This document shows, piece after piece, positions 1-22,070 of a stretch of DNA of 22,070 nucleotides. The stretch lies in NCBI GenBank assembly GCA_000388065.2, contig KB932203.1; one strand, given 5' to 3'. Position numbers and translations under genes: made by a program. The stretch is from Fonticula alba ATCC 38817 (lineage: Eukaryota; Protista; Nucleariida). The notes below the pieces were generated by a model, which was given only the letters and a program-made list of their open reading frames with translations, made no database searches and had not been told where the DNA came from. Position 1 is the stretch's first letter. Each line of letters starts with the position of its first letter.

Positions 1-150
1 ACATCGGCCCCCCCATCGCCGGAGCGGGCCACTGCCCAGACGCAGACATCGGCCCCCCCATCGCCGGAGCAAGCCGCTGCCCAGGTGCAGACATCGGCCC
101 CCCCATCGCCGGAGCAAGCCACTGCCCAGGTGCAGACATCGGCGCCGCCA
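1..150 (+). repeat. Coding tandem repeat, 45-bp unit x3 plus partial (TSAPPSPE[R/Q]A[T/A]AQ[T/V]Q)
   Basis: Units start ACATCGGC at 1, 46, 91 and 136 and are near-identical. The array probably extends upstream of the window. Confidence 0.92.
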
Positions 151-3100
151 TCCCCGACCCCAGAGCAGGTCCCCCCATCCCCACGAGTCGATCAGGTGGT
201 TGTCTCGGTCCAGACCTCCGCACCGCCGAGCCCCGAGCGGGCGGCCACCTGGTCGCAAACATCGGCCCCGCCAACTCCCGAGCAGGCGGTCACCTGGGTG
301 CAGACCTCCGCACCGCCGAGCCCCGAAGCCAGGCCAGTTGCCCGGTCCCAAACACCGGGCCCAGGTTCCCCCGTGGAGCAGAGGGCCCCGGGCATCCAGA
401 CTTCGGGCCGTTCATCGGCGCCCGGATCGCCACTTGCCGTGGCCATTCCACCAGCGGCAGTGCCATCCGCCCAGCAGCTGCCCGCCTGGCTTCCAGCCTC
501 GGCCTCGTCGTCAAGTGGATGGCGGCCGTCGGCCGGGGCCCAGACATCGGGCTCTCCATCGCCGGTGGGGCCCGTTTCTTCGGATGCTCAAACATCGGCT
601 CCGGCCTCTCCTCGGCAGCATGCCGCCGGATGCCAGACGTCAGTCCCCCCATCGCCCGCGAGCCAGGGCACCGTCGCCGTCCAAACATCGGCCCCACCGA
701 CGCCCATGCGCCAGACCGCCGCCGTCCAAACATCGGCCCCAGCTACCCCGGTATCGGCCGACGCCGCGACACAGGTCTCGGCCGGGGCCACCCCCCTCCC
801 CGGTGCCGGGTACCCCGACACCCTCAACGCCCATGATGTCCCGGCTCAAGTGGGGGATGCCCCCGGTCGTGTTGTGGCGTTGGATGTCTCGCGACCTCCC
901 CCAGGCGGCCGGGCGATGGGGGCACGGCCACCGCGAGTCCGGTCGTCGAGTCTCGGCGCGACGTCGCCCCACCTGGCTGACGGTTCGGCCGGGGTGCTGC
1001 TGCTCCACCCGGCAGACTGGCATGCCACTCGGGCCTCCGGGGCGACGACAGACGCCTGGACCCAAACATCCGCCAGCCCGTCGCCACTCCGGCCGACGGC
1101 CACCACGCAGACTTCGGCCCCGGCATCGCCCAGCCGGCGGAGCATCTCCATGCAAACCTCGTCCCCGGTCCCGGGCCTGGCCCGGGCTTCCCCGGTGTGG
1201 CTGAGCTCATCGGCACACACCTCGGCTCCGCCGTCCCCGGTCCAGCTGGCCGCCTCGGTGCAAACTTCGGCCCCGGCATCGCCCGACCGGCCAAGCGCAT
1301 CGACGCAAACCTCGGTCCCGGCATCGCCCGACCGACCAAGCGCATCGACGCAAACCTCGGCCCCGGCATCGCCCGACCGACCAAGCGCATCGACGCAAAC
1401 TTCGGTCCCGGCATCCCCCTCCTCGCCCATTCACGCCTTCACACAAACCTCCCCCTTACCCGGGAGATGGTCCCCGACCCGGTCGGGCCTGCAGCATGCC
1501 TCCGTGCCGGCACCAGTCGGCCGCATTTTGGCGCCGGTGTCGGCGCCGTGCACCAGCCTGGCCATCGGCTCGCAAACCTCGGGGCCGCCCTCGCCGGCCA
1601 TGCGCGATGTTGCCTCCCACACGTGGGACTTCCCCTCGCTGACCGGGGTCGATGCGTGGGTCCAATCGTCGCGATCCCCCTCGCCGGTGGCGCGTCGCCA
1701 GGCCGCCTCGCAGACCTCGATACCCCCCTCGCCCGAGGCCGTTCACCGTGCGGCACAGACATCAGCCCCGCCTTCGCCGGCCGGGGTGTCCGTTTGGGTG
1801 CAGGCCTCGAGCTCCCCGTCGCCGGTCGAGCGCCGCCAAACTGCCTGCCAGACCGGATCACCGTCCCCCCCGCCGGTGTCCGTCTCTCGGGCCATTCAAA
1901 CTTCGGCCCCGCCGAGTCCCGGTGTTCAACCTTCTGGACCGGCTTGGCCGACCCAGCGCCCGGCCGTGGCGCCTCCCCCCGCCATGGGATGGTCGGGAGC
2001 CCGGGCCACAAGCCCCATGGAGCAAGTGCCACACCCACTGGCACCGGTTGCTTCGGACACCGGCGTGCGGCCCCCCCGGCCGACCTCACCAGGCCCGTCT
2101 CGCACATCGATCGATGCCTCGGCGCAGACTTCACTTCCAGCCTCGCCCGTCCGGCCACACGGTGCGCACCTGTCCCCCCCTATGCGGCCTTCAGCCTCCG
2201 CCCGTCGCATAGCACCGATATTGACCCTTCCCGTCGCCCCCTTCGCTCCGTCTCCGCTCCGTCTCTGTTCGCCACGCACGCCATGGCCCCAGACTGGGAG
2301 CAGGTGGAGCTTGGTTTGATTGCGGCTCTCGGGCTGCTGGCCACGCCGGCAGCATCGGCTAGCAACAGCACCCCCCCGCCGGCTACCGTGCCCCGTCGGC
2401 AGGGGCCGCTTGCACGGCCGCGACTTGCGCGACGCCCCGAGGCTCTCCTTCTGCGCCGGATGCCTGGTGTGTCTGCGCCTTTGGCGGCACCCGCAGAGGC
2501 GACCCGGCCGTCGACGCCGGTTGCCGTGCCCATCAGCCCGGTGACTGATGAGCTGGAGATCGCCGGGCTGTATGCCGCCCTGGCTTCCCTGGCGGATGGG
2601 CCACATGCGCCGCCGAGCCGGCCCACCGCCCCGACCACCGCCCCGGTCCAGGCCGTGGGTTTGCCTGCCCGGGTGAATCGCCGGCGCATCCTGGCACGCG
2701 TCCACCACCGCGCGGGTCAACTCCACGCGGCGCACGGCCAGGCCCTGGCGCATCTCGAGCAGCATGTCCAGCAATCTGACCGCCGGATGCGCGTGGCGCA
2801 GGCGGCTCGGCTGCTGGCGGTCTCTCGCGGTCGACACCAGCTGGCCGCCACCACCCGAGCTCTTGAGTCGCAAATCGCCGGTCTCACATGCGCCCTGGCC
2901 ATCACCGAGCAAGTGGCCGCAGCCAGGGCGGCAGCAGCCCCACCGGCCGCACTGGGCCCCGTCCTTCCCCCGCCCGTGGCCTCGGCTGTGACAGTGTCCA
3001 CCCCCACACTGGCACCCCCGCCGGCGATGCTGCCGCCCCTGCATGGTGTTGCTGCTCCGATGGTGAGCCCCGCTCTGCCAGTGTCGCCCTCCCCCTCGGG

Positions 3101-5076
3101 GATGGAGGCCCTGCCGGTCGCTGCTCCTCTTGATGCTCCCCCTCCGGCTGTTCCTCCTGGTGACCCTTCCCCGGCTGCCGCCTCGCCTGGGGGCGCTTCT
3201 CCTGCTGCCATTGTCGCGCCAGGCGGCGAGGCTGCGCCGGCCGGGGCTGCCCCGCAGGAGCCGACCACCCCGGCCATGGCCGTCGACATGGCCGAGGGGG
3301 TCCCCGCCCCGGGGGGTGCTATGCTACTGGCTGCTGTCCAACCGATGGCCGCCACCTTGCCCTCGGCGCTTGCTCGCCCCTCCAGGGTGGCAATGCATCG
3401 GCATGCGGCGCCAGCTGCCACGGTGCTGCCGGGCTCGCGGCATCACTCGGCTCGTGGGCGTCTGTCGAGCATGAAGACGTCCATTCGCTCGTGCTTGCCG
3501 CGACTCGTGGCGCAGCACCCTTCACCGGCAACTGGACGCCCGGTGACACCGTCCTTGTTCTCTCCCCTGCCGCATGGTGACGAACTGGCTGGCCGGTCGT
3601 CTGCGACTCGGTCTCCTTCTCCCACGGCGGACGGCACTCCTTGTCCACCAAGTCGCCCGGCACATGACCAGCCTCCGGCCTCATTGTCGGACAGGATTCC
3701 CCTGCTGCCCGGCCCCGAGGCTCCCCTGGTACCGAGTGCTGGGCCGGAGGCGGGGCCTCCGCCGCCTGGGCATGGGCTCCAGCATGAGGCCGAAGCCGAG
3801 CCTGCCCCGTTGTTTGTACCCCCGGCCGGCTCCATGCCCGGGAGTGGCGTGGTGACTGGACGCCAGTTGGCGCCGGCTCGCTCTCCGGCGCCGCAAGGTG
3901 CACACCATCTTGCGCCTGTCTCCTCAACTCCCGCCGCATTCCCGGGGCCGGGGCCCGAGGCGGCATCCGTGTCCACGCCACGCCCGGAGCCCATTCCCGG
4001 GCCCGAGTTCGATCCTGCATCGGCCCCAGATCCCGGGCTCGTGTTCGATGAGGGCCCTGTCCCCGAGGCCGAGGCCGAGGCCGAGACCAGCCCCGCGCGT
4101 GGGGTGGCAGTCATCCTCATGCCCGAGCAGCGGGCCGAGCTGGCGCCCGTTCTCTCGGTTGCCCCGGAGGCCGATGTGCCACTCGGGGAGGTGACTTGTC
4201 CAGCACCCGCCCCCATGCCGAGCCCTCCGACGCCCTCCCAGCGAGATGCACCGGTTGTCGGTGTTCCGCCCGGCCCGGCCACCGGGCCCGCTGCCCGGGC
4301 AGGTCACCTGGACCGGAGCCGGATTCAACGCAACCTGACCCGCTCGATCCGGCGCATTCGCGGGGCGACCGCAGCGCAGGCCGCCGGGCCGGTTGCCGAG
4401 CAGGTCGCCACCTCCACGTCGAGCCGATCGCCAGCCGGCGATGTGGCCACGTCGGTGTCTGCGCCTGCCGCTCTTCCCAGCCCGGCGCCTTCTTCGGTCG
4501 GTGTCGTGCCATCGCCGGGAGAGACCCCCATTGTCTGTGCCCCGGCAACGCCTCTGCCGCTGGATTCCGGCTCGGCAGCACCCCGCCCGCTGGCCCCGGC
4601 CCCAGAGACGCCTCCCCCGTTGGTCGCCGCGTCGCCGGCCCTCGAAGGCCCGCCATCACCAAGCGTGACTGTGTCATCTTCTCGGTCTTCGTCGCTGCTG
4701 GCCTCGACGGCCTCGGTGAGCCCGTCCTCGTCGATGATGCTTGCTCCGGCGGCTCTTACGCCGCTGGGCGTGGCTTCGGCCGGCCTGGTGCCGCCGAGCG
4801 CATCGGTGTCGATGGATTTGCCAGCCCCAGCTCCGTCGGTTCCATCCGCCCCGTCAAGTGCAGCCCCATCCGCCTCGGTGGGTTTTGTGACGCCTGCTCC
4901 GCCTGCGGCGATCGCAGCTCGTCCTTCATCCTCGGTGCCACCTGCCGTGTTCTCGGGGCTGGCCTCGTCATCAGGTCCCCTGCACATGGACGACCTGGCT
5001 AGGCGCTCGACGGCCGAGAGCCTGCTGCTGCGTTCTGATGACAGCGTTGTTGCTACTGCTGCTGTCCCGGCTGTCG

Positions 5077-5110
<34 letters not shown>

Positions 5111-5847
5111 CGCTGCTGGTTCCCATGCTGCTTCGGGTCCCGTGGCTTCGACAGCCCAAGCTCGGCCCCCGAGCCAGCCTCCGCACGTCCGACAGACGTC
5201 CCCATCGACTCGCCCAGGTCCACAGCTGAGCCAGCTGGCCCGGCACCATGCGGCCCTGCATGCGGCATCGCTCTTTTCCGCCCTCTCCGCCGGGCAGGCC
5301 CCGCAGCCCGCCATGGTGGCCCCGCCTCTGCCTCCACTGGTTGCTGCGGTCATCGCTAGTGGGCCTCCCTCGCCGCAACTGCCGAGCGACCGGCGGGCCA
5401 CCTCGGCCCGGAGTATGGCCGCGCAGGCGGCCCAGTCCTTCGCCCAGATCCTGGGAGCCGGCACAGGTAGGCCCCATGCCGAGCAGTCGCCTGGCCTTGC
5501 GTCTCCCCCGCCGGCGGCCCCGAAGCCGGCTCCCCTGGTTCCGACGGCCGACGGGGCCAATCCGATTGGCGACGTGGCGCACGTCCTCTCACAGTGCGTC
5601 CCCTGCCAATCGCGCTGCCCATCCCTCCCCCCCCCCCCCCCCCCCCGCCCCAGGTCGAGGTATGCCTTTCTCTTCTGCCCTTCCCTGCACCCTGCTGACC
5701 TGCTGGCTTGCCTTCCCGCTTTCGAGCAGACTTTCGCTGCTGGTTCGACAGCAGACGCAGCTTCTCCTGGAGGAGGGCCAGCATTGGCCCGGGCCGCCTC
5801 GACATGCACTCGATCCAAAAGGGGGCCCTCTCGGGCGGCGGCACTGA
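1..5847 (+). CDS. 5'-partial large Pro/Ser/Ala-rich uncharacterised protein with a QT-motif repeat region and short predicted coiled-coil segments (>1860 aa visible)
   Basis: Frame +1 is open from base 1 (TSAPPSPERATAQTQTS...). Inferred exons: <1-2161, 2293-5593, (optional 5654-5659), 5730-5847 (TGA). Intron 2162-2292 (GTGCGC...CCCCAG, phase 1) joins the 744-aa and 1584-aa track ORFs in frame (RPH|DWEQVELG). Intron 5594-5729 (GTGCGT...CTGAC...GAGCAG, phase 2) gives ...VAHVLSQ|LSLLVRQQTQLLLEEG... The exon total of 5580 nt is divisible by 3. No recognised catalytic domain. Confidence 0.7.
1261..1415 (+). repeat. Coding tandem repeat, 45-bp unit x3 plus partial (QTS[A/V]PASPDRPSAST)
   Basis: Units start CAAAC[T/C]TCGG at 1261, 1306, 1351 and 1396. 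Confidence 0.92.
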
Positions 5848-8146: not shown

Positions 8147-9194
8147 ATGAACGTTTCCTGCCTTCGCCTAGGCTCCCGGGTCGGGAGGCCAGCCTTCCTC
8201 CCTGCCCGGGCACTGTCGGCCGTCAGCGTGGGCGCGCGATCGTACTCCTCGACCGGCGTGATGGCCACCCGGGCGGAGGCCGCCGCCGCTGACGACGACG
8301 ACGACGACGACGAGCTCGCCCACCCCGCCCTCACCCCCCTGGATGAGGTCCCAGCTGTCAAGTGCCAGCTAGTCAAGCAGGCCCTGGAGCTGATCAAGAG
8401 CCCAAACTTGCTTGTAGCCCCCTCCCCAGATAGGGCGCCTCGCAATGGGCTCTTCTCCCTGTGGAAGCCGCCCGGCTTGACGTCCTTCTATTGCCTGGAG
8501 GTGATGGGCCGGTCACTTGCGAGTGATCTGATCCGGCGCATCGAGGCCGGGGAGTTCCCCCCGGCTGGGGGGTCCCCGTCGGCCAAGGGCTCTTCACCGG
8601 CCGGGCGGCCACCGGAAGAGGAGGAAACCATGCCGGCACACCTGGCCGCCAGGAAGGTGGCTCGAGGCCTGCGGGTCGGTCATGGCGGCACGCTGGACCC
8701 CCTGGCATCGGGTGTGCTGGTGGTCGGCGTCGGACGGGAAGGCTGCCGGAACCTGACCGGCGCGCTGACCGAGCACCGGAAGTCCTATGTGGCGCGGCTG
8801 CGCCTCGGCGTGTCGACTAGCACCTCGGATCGCGATGGGGCGGCCCTCTGGGGGTCGGCCATGCACTCGGCTTCCGACGAGCAGCCCCCCGAGGGGGATG
8901 CCTTCACGGGGCCTTTCAGTCGGGCGAGCCTCATCCGGCGCTTTGGCACGGCCAATTTGGCCGCCCTGCCGGTGGGCATCCTCCAGGCTGCCCTGCGGGA
9001 GCACATTGCGGCCTTGGTCGGCGATCACCTCCAGACGCCGCCGATGTGCGTCCGACCCGGCCCCTCTTCCTGCTTCTCTGCGCCAGCGCACAATGGCACA
9101 CTTGCTCCCGCCGTCCTCCCCCCCCCCCCCCCCCCCCCCCCTCCCCCATGCCGTTGTCTGTGTTTTGTTCTGACGCACGGCCAACCTGCATCCC

Positions 9195-9228
<34 letters not shown>

Positions 9229-10363
9229 CCTCTTCCACCATGCCGTTGTCTGTGTTTTGTTCTGACGCACGGCCAACCTGCATCCCTTGCCCATTCTTCC
9301 CCCCCCCCACCTGCAGCCAGTCGGCCAAGCAGCGCAATGGCCTGCGCCTGTACCAGACCTTCCGGTATCTGCTGGAGCATGGCCACATCGATCGGGCCCT
9401 GCTGCAGGAGCACCACGAGGAACTGATCCTCAGTAAGAAGCGCCCGGTCACCCTGGCCAAGATCAATCGCGACAACCGCGTGGTCCGGCGGAAGCTGGCC
9501 CTGGCCGGGTTCGACTCGCCAGCCACATTGGACTATCTCGGGGCCACCTTCCTGTCCTTCGCCCTGGGCGAGCCTCAGCCCCGGCCGGATGCCGACCTGG
9601 CGCGTGCCTTCGCCGAGCGCCCTCTGGATGTGGAACTCCTCGGGCCCGAGTCCGGGCCCCACAGCAAGACCACGGCCGCCGGGTCGGCCCAGCAGGTCGA
9701 CCACCGGGATATCTTCCAAATGGCCGGGTCCTACCTGCCCGAGACCAGCCAGGTGACCCTCTTTGGTGCCACGGTGCTGGATGCCCCGTCGCCCGTGCTT
9801 CCGGCCCCGGGCCCGGGGGGCGAGTCCCTCGACCAGCAGGGGCTCACCCTGGCAAGCCCCAGCGCCACGTTGAATTTGGAGCACTGCCTCGATGTGGACA
9901 TCGACATCCACTGCTCCTCTGGCTTCTATGTCCGGTCTCTGATCGAGTCGGTCGGCCGTTCCCTCGGGGTGCGTGGGATTTCCCGGCCTCCTGGCGCTTG
10001 GGCACGCCCTGCTTATGTCCACAGATCATATACATATATGTTTATATGTGTGTGTGTGTGTGTGTGTGTTTTTCTTCGCGTGTTTTGCCTTTGATCCTGA
10101 CACCCTGGATGTCTGTCCCTCTTCCCGCCCCCTCGCCGGGCTTGTGACTCTCCCCCCTTTTGCAGTGCGGCGCGCACATGGTTCAGCTTTGCCGGACATC
10201 GCAAGGACCCTTCGACCAGCGTGTCTCTCTCGACGTGCGTTGTTTTTCCCCTTCCCTGCCTCATGCGCCCGGCCTCCGCCGCGGTTTCGCGCGCTCTGAC
10301 AAAGTTGCATGCCCCGTCCAGTTGGCCAACCTCAAGTGGAAGGACCTGGACAGATTCCTCTGA
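8147..10363 (+). CDS. PUS4: TruB/Pus4-family tRNA pseudouridine(55) synthase with an N-terminal mitochondrial-type presequence (~553 aa, 4 exons)
   Basis: Inferred exons 8147-9045, 9317-9968, 10166-10234, 10322-10363 (1662 nt). TruB motifs in order: NGLFSLWKPPGLTS; RVGHGGTLDPLASGVLVVGVG (catalytic Asp); KSYVARLRLGVSTSTSDRDG; QTPPIQSAKQRNGLRLYQ; IHCSSGFYVRSLIESVGRSLG|CGAHMVQLCRTSQGPF. The family call is firm; PUS4 versus TRUB1/2 orthology and the last intron are less so. Confidence 0.88.
9146..9287 (+). repeat. Exact 50-bp direct repeat within intron 1 of the TruB gene
   Basis: CCATGCCGTTGTCTGTGTTTTGTTCTGACGCACGGCCAACCTGCATCCCT occurs at 9146-9195 and 9238-9287. Each copy follows a poly-C tract. 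Confidence 0.9.
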
Positions 10364-11477: not shown

Positions 11478-11552
<75 letters not shown>

Positions 11553-11961: not shown

Positions 11962-12034
11962 GGGGGCGTAGCTCAAATGGTAGAGCGGCCGCTTAGCATG
12001 CGGCAGGCAGGGGGATCGATACCCTCCGCCTCCA
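11962..12034 (+). tRNA. tRNA-Ala-AGC: tRNA-Ala (anticodon AGC), 73 nt, intronless
   Basis: Acceptor stem GGGGGCG/CGCCTCC+A with the G3:U70 Ala identity pair. D-arm GCTC-AAATGGTA-GAGC. Anticodon arm GCCGC-TTAGCAT-GCGGC. T-arm GGGGG-ATCGATA-CCCTC. The A54 T-loop is typical of eukaryotic tRNA-Ala(AGC). Confidence 0.98.
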
Positions 12035-18500: not shown

Positions 18501-20508
18501 GTCTGCCTGCGCCATTTATTTCTCGGTGCCCACGCTGACGCCCTGGGCCTCCTGTGTGTGTGTGTGTGTGTGTGTGTTCAACCCTTTTCGCCCTCCTCTC
18601 CCCCCCCCCCTCCTTCCGCCCCCCGGCCCCGTTTGCCCCTCCCGCTCGGTGCATTGGCCATGCGCGCAGCATCGGCTCTACCTATTCCTTTGATTCCACG
18701 GCATCCGGGTCTGGTCCTGGCCCGGCCGCTGGGCCGGTCGACATGGCCGGCTCCTCGGAGGGGGCCCAGCCCAACATGTCGGCCCATCACGCCGGCACTG
18801 CCGGCCCCACTCCTCCTCAAATCGTGGTCTACTCGTCGGACGGCGGGGTAACTGGCGGCTTGCTGCCGGCCACCTCGCGGCACTTCTTCATCTTGACCGA
18901 GTTCGCCGATGGCGGGTCCCTGCATCAGGCCATTCACAGCTCCAAGGCTCGGCTTCCCCTGTGGGTGAAGCTGAAGCTGGCCCTGGACGTGGCGCGCGGC
19001 ATGGAGTACCTGCACACCCGGCCAAATCCGGTCATCCACCGAGATCTCAACCCGCAAAATGTGCTGCTTGTGTTCGGCCGGCCGGGGGCCGGGCGCGCGC
19101 GGGCCGACCCGAATGCCGCCGGGTCCCTCGCGGCCGCTGCGGCCGCTGCCACCCCATCCACTGCCAGCCAGCTGCCCAGCCGCAGTGCGCACAGTCGAAC
19201 CCTCAGCACCGGCCTGCTCGGTGGCCAGGAGGGCCCCGGCGGCCTGGGCGGTCTGGGCCCGGCCTTCCCTTCGGGCACGCCCTTGTCGTCGGTGTCCGAG
19301 GTGCCCGGATCGCCGCCCGGGTCGCCGCGAGCCGCCACGCCCCCCGAAGCGCCCCCCGGGCCGCCGTCCCTGGATGAGTGGGACCGTAACAGCATCGTCC
19401 TCCGGGCCGTGGTGGCGGATTTCGGCGAGTCGCAGCTCCTGCTGGAGGGTGATGTGGACCCGGGCGCCTCCGGGTCTCGGCCTGCCTTCCGCCAGGGGCC
19501 CGCCACCGGGCCGCACTTCCGCGACATGACCAAGCAGCCAGGGGTGCGTGTCTCGCACGCGCGCGCACACGCACACGCACACGCACACGCACACGCACAC
19601 ACATACATACATACATACATACATACATGTATATGTTCTCCCCCACACACAGCCCGCTGTGCCTACATCCGTGTGTCACTCACCCACTCTCACGCCCTGC
19701 AGAACCTTCGCTACATGGCTCCGGAGGTCTTTCTCCAGGCGGACTATTCCACCAGTGCTGACGTCTACTCTTTCGGCCTTTGTTTGTGGGAGCTTTTGGC
19801 CGAGGCGACTCCGTTCGCCGGCCAGCCGCCAGGTGCGTCTGCGCAACTTGCATGGCCCTGTCCCTGCCCTGCCCCCCCCCCCCCCCCCCCCTGCTCTCTC
19901 TGCCCCTCCTGCTAGGGGTTCTGTCTCCATGTGTGTATCCTGCTTTGATGCCGCTGACCAGTCTCTCCTCGGGTGCCTTTCCCCCATGCCCGGTCGTCTA
20001 CCATGCTTCTCCTCGCCTTTCCCCTCCTACCTACCCCATCCTTGGTGCAGCCTATGTCGCCTTCCACATGGCCAACCATGACTTCCGACCGGCCCTACCC
20101 AGCGACCGGGCCACCCTTCACGTGCCGGCCATGATGCCGGCCACGTCGGATTATGTGCAGGCCCCGGCGCCGACATACCTAACCAGCGCCGACTCCCAAG
20201 GGTCTCCCTGGCCACCGGGGGTGGTTTCCCTGATTCGCGAATGCTGGAGTGCGTCGCCTGCGCGGAGGCCCAGCTTCTCCACCATTGTCACCCAGCTGGG
20301 GGACATCCTCAACCAGGTGGCCCGGTCGACGACGGCCGTGGCACCTTTCTTCTCGGCCGAGCCGCCGGCGGCCATCAACGGCCCGGTCAGTCCTGAACCC
20401 CATCATCCCCACTCGATGTTGCATCCTGGCCGTGGGGCGATTCCCCCGCTGCCCGGGGGCGCCGGCCCCTTCCACCGGCCGGTTCCCTCCGCCAAGTACA
20501 TTGACTGA
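12524..20508 (+). CDS. Ankyrin-repeat TKL (MAP3K-like) protein kinase, TNNI3K-like (~1980 aa, ~13 exons)
   Basis: Inferred exons 12524-12563, 12674-12875, 12975-13179, 13279-13351, 13617-13783, 13925-14602, 14781-15489, 15664-17043, 17264-17356, 17460-18393, 18670-19543, 19703-19832, 20051-20508 (5943 nt, divisible by 3). Ankyrin-like motifs: FAPLHIAIAQ, GSTSLHHLV, YPPLHLSLSRGD, EGNNALHLAARRAD, HLGDTPLHVCL, RLGDTLLHALF. Kinase motifs: IGEGSFCKV, IAVKQ, LCREARILSQLSHPNIIRFLG, LTEFADGGSL, DVARGMEYLH, IHRDLNPQNVLL, VVADFGES, MTKQPGNLRYMAPEV, DVYSFGLCLWELL, RECWSASPARRPSF. The kinase exons are firm; the N-terminal exons are moderate confidence. Confidence 0.85.
13372..13479. other. Assembly gap (N-run) in a kinase intron
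   Basis: 108 Ns flanked by C runs. Confidence 0.99.
15581..15628. other. Assembly gap (N-run) within inferred kinase intron 15490-15663
   Basis: 48 Ns flanked by C runs. The surrounding GTACGC donor and ATCAG acceptor are phase-1 compatible. Confidence 0.95.
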
Positions 20509-21428: not shown

Positions 21429-22070
21429 TCAGGCCAGAGACACAAGGATACCAGCGGCGCAGGCAACCGCGGCCACGGCGCCCGAGCCCCAGGATGACCG
21501 GGCAAACGCCAAGACAGAGAAGGCATCGGAGGAGGAGCTCGAGGCCTCGATGGGACCGCCGTTCTGGAACCATCACGGGAAGGGGGGCATCAATGGGGAG
21601 GAACGACAGAGAGGGGGCATTAGCTTGGGCGTTCGGTGGCCAGGAAAAGAAAAAGAGGAAAGAGCCCCGCCATCGCAGAAGAAGGACACAATAATGCTGG
21701 CCAGTTGATGGGGGAGGATTTTCACGCACAGAGCCGTTGGAACCACCGTTGGAGCCACCGTTGGAGCCACCGTTGGAGCCACCGTTGGAGCCACCGTTGG
21801 AGCCACCGTTGGAGCCACCGTTGGAACCTTCCGGGGGGACGGCGCTCCCATTGCTACCAGATCCACTGGCGGGAGGAGTGCCACCATTGGACGACTCACC
21901 GCCGGGAGGGATGCCACCGTCGCTGGAGCTATCGGCCGGAGGCGGATTGGTGGGAGGAGGATCGGTAGGCGGGGGGTTGGTGGGGGGAGGATCGGTGGGC
22001 GGGGGGTTGGTGGGGGGAGGATCGGTGGGCGGGGGATTGGTGGGGGGAGGATCGGTGGGGGGAGGATTGG
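21429..22070 (-). CDS. 3' end of a probable GPI-anchored surface protein with a Pro/Thr and Gly/Ser/Asn stalk (5'-partial, ~157 aa visible)
   Basis: Exon >22070-21730 reads (N/D)PPPT x9, then SSSDGGIPPGGESSNGG..., then (SNGG)7. Intron 21729-21564 (GTGCGT...TTCCAG, phase 0). The last exon 21563-21429 reads NGGPIEASSSSSDAFSVLAFARSSWGSGAVAAVACAAGILVSLA*: small residues followed by an uncharged hydrophobic C-terminus with no cytosolic tail. This frame is not in the ORF track because it has no start codon in the window. Confidence 0.78.
21730..21825 (-). repeat. Coding 12-bp tandem repeat, (SNGG)7 + SNGS
   Basis: GGAGCCACCGTT repeats on the + strand. Confidence 0.93.
21934..22068 (-). repeat. Coding 15-bp repeat with a 30-bp higher-order unit (NPPPT-DPPPT), 9 units visible and running off the window
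   Basis: Near-identical GGTGGGGGGAGGATCGGTGGGCGGGGGGTT units on the + strand. Confidence 0.93.

Follow-up and report, generated by a model that had tools for sequence, protein, structure and literature searches.

What, if anything, binds the short peptide module that one gene of Fonticula alba repeats again and again is the question raised by this locus. We analysed a window of 22,070 nucleotides (nt) from strain ATCC 38817 (contig KB932203.1; C3:717677-739746 in a genome of 31.3 Mb with ~70% GC), in which positions 1-2161 are the central exon of an expressed gene without detectable relatives. On the plus strand, 1..2161 encodes a 720-residue degenerate tandem repeat, hereafter the array, whose module consists of 5-6 proline-free, beta-prone residues followed by Q-T-S-x-P-x-S/T-P, mostly at a spacing of 15 residues. 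A preliminary description of this DNA had proposed the array as a candidate scaffold for the dynein light chain LC8 (DYNLL). We tentatively favour, with a confidence that stops somewhat short of even, the reading that the array is an LC8 ladder scaffold in which each module is a putative weak LC8 site. LC8 is a conserved dimerisation hub, and the way in which multiple weak motifs together convert disorder into rigid rods is under active study (ASCIZ, Nup159 and KANK1).

The array repeats an amino acid motif

Over window 1-2160, frame +1 alone runs without a stop, and each of the five remaining frames carries 2-9. Its 720 residues contain QT 30 times (residue-shuffle mean 4.75, maximum 13), QTS 25 times (mean 0.83), QTS.P.[ST]P 20 times (mean 0.01) and P.[ST]P 27 times (mean 6.4). 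The preliminary description had estimated about 27 modules, and a looser scan of the frame that also counts the variants HTS, QSS, QAS, QTP and QTG gives exactly 27 full modules in the window; its statement that most motifs continue into P-x-S-P agrees with the pattern counts. It had also described the residues before Q as nearly proline-free, which held as well: positions -4 to -1 are rich in A, S, T and V and include one proline in 100 positions, compared to 18.5% in the whole array. T, V or I occupies position -1 in 64% of the window modules (18% overall), and successive QTS are 15-16 residues apart in 14 of 24 intervals. The modules are arranged as follows:

28..372, plus strand: module block 1, 7 modules with anchors TQT, VQT (four) and SQT (two), including near-identical 45-nt units
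526..750, plus strand: module block 2, 5 modules with anchors AQT (two), CQT and VQT (two)
751..1047, plus strand: nearly module-free interruption of ~100 residues, with a degenerate ADAATQVS at 772 as its sole site and a QTS spacing of 112 residues
1048..1419, plus strand: module block 3, 7 full modules (TQT five times, VQT and an HTS variant)
within 1048..1419, plus strand: further elements of block 3, namely an MQTS variant at 1153 and three near-identical PSASTQTS units with a 45-nt period and 93% matches
1558..1920, plus strand: module block 4, 7 modules with anchors SQT (two), VQS, AQT, VQA, CQT and IQT
2110..2148, plus strand: last module, beginning IDASAQTS, 4 residues ahead of the splice donor

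Tandem Repeats Finder detected three blocks of near-identical 45-nt units amid older, diverged modules, and this local amplification (91-93% identity) is recent. Over the 35 QTS modules of the window and of the upstream piece described below, Q is encoded by CAA in 18 cases and by CAG in 17, T by four codons and S+6 by both TCN and AGY; the Q, T, S, P, S and P of the module are all written with varying synonymous codons. Since the fixed residues use many codons, what is conserved is the amino acid motif and not the DNA. Besides Q and T, the best-conserved residues are S+2, P+4, S+6 and P+7. At the genome scale, a strict DNA pattern for QTSxPxSP had 27 matches in 31 Mb, 24 of them inside the array gene, while the reversed patterns used as control had 1 and 1.

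These data bear on the possibility that the array is a lineage-specific repeat without a specific partner, that is, a low-complexity spacer, an entropic linker between helices or a protein that self-associates through its beta-stretches. The recent amplification of 45-nt units would suit such a repeat, as would the lack of relatives or domains for any part of the protein, the generally Ala/Pro/Ser-rich coding sequence of F. alba here and the low-confidence beta-meander as which AlphaFold2 (AF2) shows the modules. However, the old, diverged modules retain Q-T-S-x-P-x-S-P despite synonymous and serine-family codon changes, and the neighbouring exon, 1099 residues of composition similar to the array, lacks the motif and contains only 1 QT. 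The retention of the motif across codon changes, together with the motif-free neighbour, therefore indicates that selection acts on a particular motif and not on composition. We regard a repeat without a partner as unlikely.

The array gene is spliced and expressed

The RNA evidence came from three small runs of 2012, kept as contigs. A further RNA-seq run, labelled as another organism, gave 0 reads here and is uninformative. Two GT..AG joints on the plus strand indicate that the contigs contain spliced RNA of the array gene, which is organised as follows:

1..2161, plus strand: array exon, frame +1, open at the window start; RNA contigs over 1165-1341 and 1994-2160
2162..2292, plus strand: intron 1, 131 nt, GT..AG, leading from frame +1 to +3; joint in a contig of one RNA run
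2293..5593, plus strand: second exon, ~1100 residues, Ala/Pro-rich
5594..5729, plus strand: intron 2, 136 nt, GT..AG, leading from frame +3 to +1; joints in contigs of two RNA runs
5730..5847, plus strand: last coding exon, 39 codons, with the stop codon at 5845-5847; the transcript contig extends to 5910

Whether frame +1 is the expressed one had been named as a check by the preliminary description, and the splice phases of both introns fit this frame through to the stop. That the array is not a protein feature at all, either because another frame is translated or because the transcript is non-coding, appears extremely improbable. At 72% GC long open reading frames arise by chance (106 of at least 100 residues in the window), and the coverage of the array by RNA contigs is patchy; against this stand the absence of stops over 2,160 nt in frame +1 alone, the two introns that join open frames in phase as far as 5845-5847 and a codon pattern of amino-acid-level conservation.

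An imperfect (TGC)n run in the second coding exon (window 5051-5118) encodes a poly-Ala tract in the gene frame, and the RNA contigs seem to be cut at this run (5068-5122).

The array extends upstream of the window

The array had been said to continue upstream. The same array is indeed seen at window -7298..-6647, with 10 further modules, but the 5,458 bases immediately 5' of the window are N. Window 1-70 is identical to the last 70 nt of the upstream array piece (C3:710960-711029), and an island of 519 nt that lies between two N runs likewise copies sequence flanking N runs elsewhere. The N runs look like scaffold gaps with overlapping contig ends, with a small misplaced contig in the scaffold, and on this interpretation of the assembly the two array pieces probably join directly. 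Such a join would probably give ~37 modules in a protein of ~2,800 residues. If the contig ends overlap, the gene is split by gaps, and the module count may therefore be under- or over-stated; additional collapsed modules may exist. A tandem gene duplication was rejected as the origin of the duplicated upstream flanks because the offsets disagree (6,717 vs 4,403 nt) and the duplicated pieces lie right at the borders of N runs, as would be expected of scaffold gaps. In the same region, border sequences of C3:711700-712217 are exactly duplicated at C3:703616-703710 and C3:707770-707815, which likewise border N runs.

The modules resemble LC8-binding motifs in part

LC8 binding presupposes an LC8 gene, and the F. 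alba genome has one (C9:612349-612714, two exons that together match PF01221 with 97 bits), along with one dynein heavy chain. Translated one after the other, the exons give the protein that NCBI lists as 'dynein light chain LC8-type, variant [Fonticula alba]'. The LC8 gene carries an in-frame 117-nt intron without a stop between exons at locus coordinates 1258-1386 and 1504-1641. PF11540, an uninformative model of 31 positions for the LC8 site of the dynein intermediate chain itself, had no match, and no literature joining F. alba with LC8 was found.

LC8 prefers a polar D, S or T at -4, a basic or large side chain at -3 and D, E or P at +2, and disfavours bulky aromatic residues at -2 (PMC6607443, PMC3078936). 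The anchor [T/V/I]-Q-[T/V] is present in most modules, with T, V or I at -1 in 23 of the 35 QTS modules and Q and T fixed by the scan. Of these 35, 21 have D, S or T at -4, and D, S, T or N stands there in 65 of 79 validated binders (Table S4, PMC6607443). Serine at +2, common to all 35 modules, occurs in 9 of the 79 binders, e.g. VSRETQTS and SEVGTQTS (PMC6607443 Table S4). The array site closest to validated binders is VSRAIQTS of block 4. When the array alone was modelled by AF2, the mean pLDDT (score of the predicted local distance difference test) was 44 and no stable fold was obtained, yet a strand was drawn exactly at -6..+2 of each module. The anchor, the residues at -4, the low proline content and the modelled strands thus fit motif binding by beta-augmentation.

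In order to score the modules, a position matrix was built from a hand tally of the LC8Pred training table (79 binders and 32 anchor-containing non-binders; PMC6607443 Table S4) with background frequencies that we approximated ourselves. The module median, Q and T being kept fixed, was 8.2 compared to -1.8 for within-module permutations, none of 2000 of which reached the observed value, so that the modules scored better than shuffled controls, as the LC8 proposal had anticipated. The 10th percentile of binder-like peptides (9.0) was exceeded by 46% of the modules. Look-alikes of the modules are found on both sides of the training table, among the binders (IDAATQTE, VSRETQTS and TTASTQTP) and among the non-binders (PSSSTQTS and VDTAAQTN) (PMC6607443 Table S4).

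We also co-folded two copies of F. alba LC8 with window:16-153 (46 residues, three consensus modules). The three runs gave ipSAE values of 0.41, 0.42 and 0.41, the best of three controls 0.00, and the verdict of the tool was 'weak support'. The runs agreed in at least 83% of contacts with a partner pLDDT of at least 53, and no interface was reported. In the calibration of the tool, 51 of 78 solved complexes and 2 of 108 mismatched pairs attained the mark, and values of at most 0.60 comprised 5 of the 78 solved complexes and all 4 passing mismatches, of 180. The co-folding check that the preliminary description had suggested for single repeats was thus made with a three-module fragment and two LC8 chains.

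Several observations weigh against LC8 as the partner. Module scores lie at the low end of the binders (binder-like median 15.1), and almost the whole matrix score comes from Q and T, the flanks adding practically nothing (flank median -0.3, between 4.75 for binder-like and -2.4 for non-binder-like samples). Ala stands at -3 in 19 of 35 modules, where binders prefer K, R, I, T or V, and 9 modules carry Trp or Phe at -2; a bulky hydrophobic -2 defines a non-binder class, and a small -3 is also unfavourable (PMC6607443). In 12 of 35 modules the residue at -1 is A, C, M or S, and an AQT peptide of IRS1 and PSSSTQTS of MUC5B are non-binders (PMC6607443 Table S4). The modules agree only in part with the consensus of PMC3078936, having neither K or R at -3 nor D or E at +2, and a strict Eukaryotic Linear Motif-style expression, [^P].[KR].TQT, had 0 matches. 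The pass in the co-folding is weak by the calibration given above and may come from the tool's recall of TQT complexes already solved, and the LC8 used in it was the database variant, which has only 77 residues and lacks the first strand. F. alba LC8 is itself only 52% identical to animal LC8 over these 77 residues, its strand beta4 reading FIFMQIDRQN compared to FIYFYLGQVA in animals. Because of this divergence, the animal-derived motif rules may not transfer exactly, in either direction. Finally, the searches for relatives found no orthologue by which conservation could be judged. Altogether, the LC8 gene, the reading frame and the above-shuffle scores stand on the side of the scaffold proposed earlier; the low-end scores, the intermediate flank scores and the 'weak support' of the co-folding keep this backing modest.

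Besides Q and T, residues beyond the LC8 footprint are the best conserved

The four best-conserved residues besides Q and T (S+2, P+4, S+6 and P+7) fall beyond the 8-residue footprint of LC8, which also counts against LC8 as a sufficient explanation and indicates that something else constrains the module as well. They raise the alternative of a platform for multisite docking and phosphorylation that domains other than LC8 would read, which we consider rather doubtful. Candidate readers would be MAPK- or CDK-type kinases, GSK3-type priming from S+6 to S+2, Pin1/WW, SH3 or an unknown reader of QTSxPxSP. In addition to P.[ST]P, the patterns [ST]P.[KR] (CDK type; 10 in the array, shuffle mean 2.0), P..P.[KR] (8, mean 1.3) and [ST]...[ST]P (29, mean 9.0) are enriched, and P-x-[ST]-P (MAPK type) and [ST]-P-x-[KR] are found clustered in a region predicted to be disordered. 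Since the modules are rich in such patterns, kinases or SH3/WW-type readers may act on them with or without LC8. A platform of this kind nevertheless leaves unexplained the invariant Q and T, as well as the exclusion of proline and the preference for beta-branched residues over the preceding 4-5 residues, and full CDK or SH3 class II patterns are present in only about a third of the modules. Among other motifs considered, an SQ/TQ cluster for ATM/ATR kinases was dropped, S or T preceding Q in only about a third of the modules, and 14-3-3 mode 1 and Polo-box motifs were rejected as not fitting the module.

Helices flank the array

AF2 single-sequence modelling placed a short hydrophobic helix directly after the array, then a second short helix and then one 91-residue helix:

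2298..2339, plus strand: short hydrophobic helix WEQVELGLIAALGLL, directly after the array, as modelled
2664..2936, plus strand: single 91-residue helix (AF2 single-sequence, pLDDT ~95), candidate dimerisation element

The coiled coil that had been predicted downstream of the array is thereby borne out as a single long predicted helix, which is joined to the array frame only across the 131-nt intron. On the other side, coiled-coil-like segments are present in the candidate N-terminal region, in the upstream frame. The candidate start, MPGSPSQRPPLADED..., is hydrophilic and lacks a signal peptide; this start was inferred from sequence, and the N-terminus so obtained reads MPGSPSQRPP... According to these models the protein is mostly disordered, with helical segments on both sides of the array that are probably dimerising.

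Relatives were sought for all parts of the protein. No Pfam family matched the array, the next exon or the 1009 residues upstream at E <= 1. In phmmer, the 1099-residue exon had 0 hits among 1.84 billion representatives, the self hit being absent too. For the array and for the N-terminal region alike, word-index searching over lengths of 0.55-1.75 times the query gave 0 hits among 8000 candidates each, and the ESM Atlas returned no usable hit.

The flanks of the array are also relevant to whether it could be a mucin-like, O-glycosylated extracellular Pro/Thr/Ser repeat, with the hydrophobic helix after it as a membrane anchor. F. alba secretes a stalk matrix, and Pro, Ser and Thr account for 45% of the array, which resembles mucin-type repeats in composition, tandem build and the occasional TQT. 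The hydrophobic segment VELGLIAALGLLATPAASA (window 2304-2360), the sole one near the array, is a marginal candidate for a membrane span, with a Kyte-Doolittle value of 1.64 over 19 residues and an Arg-rich stretch within ~30 residues downstream. Animal mucin repeats (MUC2 and MUC5B) hold TQT without an LC8 role (PMC6607443 Table S4). However, the segment is short, contains Glu and barely attains the threshold. Unlike mucins, the array protein has a candidate N-terminus that lacks a signal peptide and leads into coiled-coil-like segments, long helices on both sides of the array and invariant positions for QT and P-x-S-P. A mucin-like nature is, in our view, very unlikely.

An LC8 ladder as a working model

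The assembly that we infer for an LC8 ladder, from binding to phospho-regulation, would be as follows. Each module would be a weak LC8 motif and would dock as an added beta-strand in one groove of the LC8 dimer. The flanking helices would pre-pair two parallel chains, and many LC8 dimers would then zip the paired chains cooperatively into a beads-on-a-string ladder or rod. The P-x-S-P of each stiff x-P-x-S-P linker would be a proline-directed kinase site that tunes assembly. The more specific version, in which the array zips two chains via at least 30 LC8 dimers into a rod of more than 100 nm whose assembly is set by linker phosphorylation, is a bolder proposal that we hold to be improbable, if well short of negligible.

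Phosphorylation of clients at the anchor or close to it has been documented to lower LC8 affinity (PMC12017986). A phospho-switch at the S-P of +6/+7 remains conjecture because the +6 site is not obviously in this class. The comparison with Bim (BCL2L11) is instructive: in its site CDKSTQTP, followed by SPP, TQT is directly succeeded by a Ser/Pro cluster, as in the array, and LC8 affinity drops when the client is phosphorylated in the anchor or close by (PMC12017986, citing Lei and Davis 2003). In Bim, however, the phospho-acceptor lies within the anchor of a single site, whereas the S-P of the array lies outside the 8-residue footprint; a direct Bim-like switch is therefore not implied.

On paper, the array resembles polybivalent LC8 clients, of which it is a candidate member, and is closest in logic to KANK1. 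The L2 linker of KANK1 similarly combines many weak, non-canonical motifs, a long disordered linker and short uniform spacers (10.1101/2025.07.16.665182). Cooperative binding that turns disorder into a rod has been proposed for it, and no KANK1 motif passes LC8Pred (bioRxiv 10.1101/2025.07.16.665182); a similar failure of single motifs would be expected for the array modules. The two have no sequence relationship. KANK1 has at least 15 sites, linkers of 3-4 residues and N/Q anchors, whereas the array has ~37 duplicated modules, Pro-rich linkers of 7 residues and an invariant QT, and KANK1 binding was measured by isothermal titration calorimetry, size-exclusion chromatography with multi-angle light scattering and electron microscopy, whereas for the array binding is a prediction. 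The earlier claim of more sites than in known clients has to be judged against this new yardstick of at least 15 LC8 dimers, which ~37 modules would still exceed.

Among the established polybivalent clients, ASCIZ/ATMIN has 7-11 TQT motifs and the Nup159 DID has 5 (PMC5963919, PMC12017986). They share with the array TQT-type motifs in disorder, LC8-bridged chain pairs and a nearby dimerisation element, although in the array these are only predicted, and the ATMIN sites VSRETQTS and SSVETQTS have the same Q-T-S ending. In contrast to the neutral flanks of the array, the ASCIZ and Nup159 motifs are mostly strong, with D or S at -4, a larger residue at -3 and D or E at +2. They are not tandem repeats of one unit, and the array has 3-7 times more sites. 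Zinc fingers, FG repeats and a beta-propeller, as in ASCIZ and Nup159, were not found in the array protein by the Pfam search.

If LC8 does bind, the locus would offer ~37 sites in a natural, near-periodic row, joined by uniform linkers that each bear a kinase site, and hence an exceptionally clean system in which to study cooperativity, register and phospho-tuning. It would also show that scaffolds of this type have an independent origin beyond animals and fungi. Were the rod of at least 30 dimers also real, this protein would be the highest-valency LC8 client known, ahead of all proposed so far. It would then also be the first client to derive from tandem amplification of a single unit that combines motif and phosphosite. 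If LC8 does not bind, the invariant QTSxPxSP would point to an unknown reader in a poorly studied sister group of fungi.

Other features of the window

Downstream of the array gene, the window contains one tRNA gene:

11962-12034, plus strand: tRNA-Ala (anticodon AGC), ~6 kb downstream of the array gene

A perfect (CGC)x24.7 repeat lies just ahead of it, at 11479-11552. At window 9115-9308, a 92-nt unit is present in 2.1 copies with 88% identity, each copy opening with 30-36 nt of poly-C, and similar poly-C runs occur in intron 2 (5623-5651) and at 19872-19891. Towards the window end, a 12-nt tandem repeat occupies 21734-21825 (7.7 copies, 98% identity), and a G-rich 15/30-nt minisatellite begins at 21944 and runs off the end of the window at 22070.

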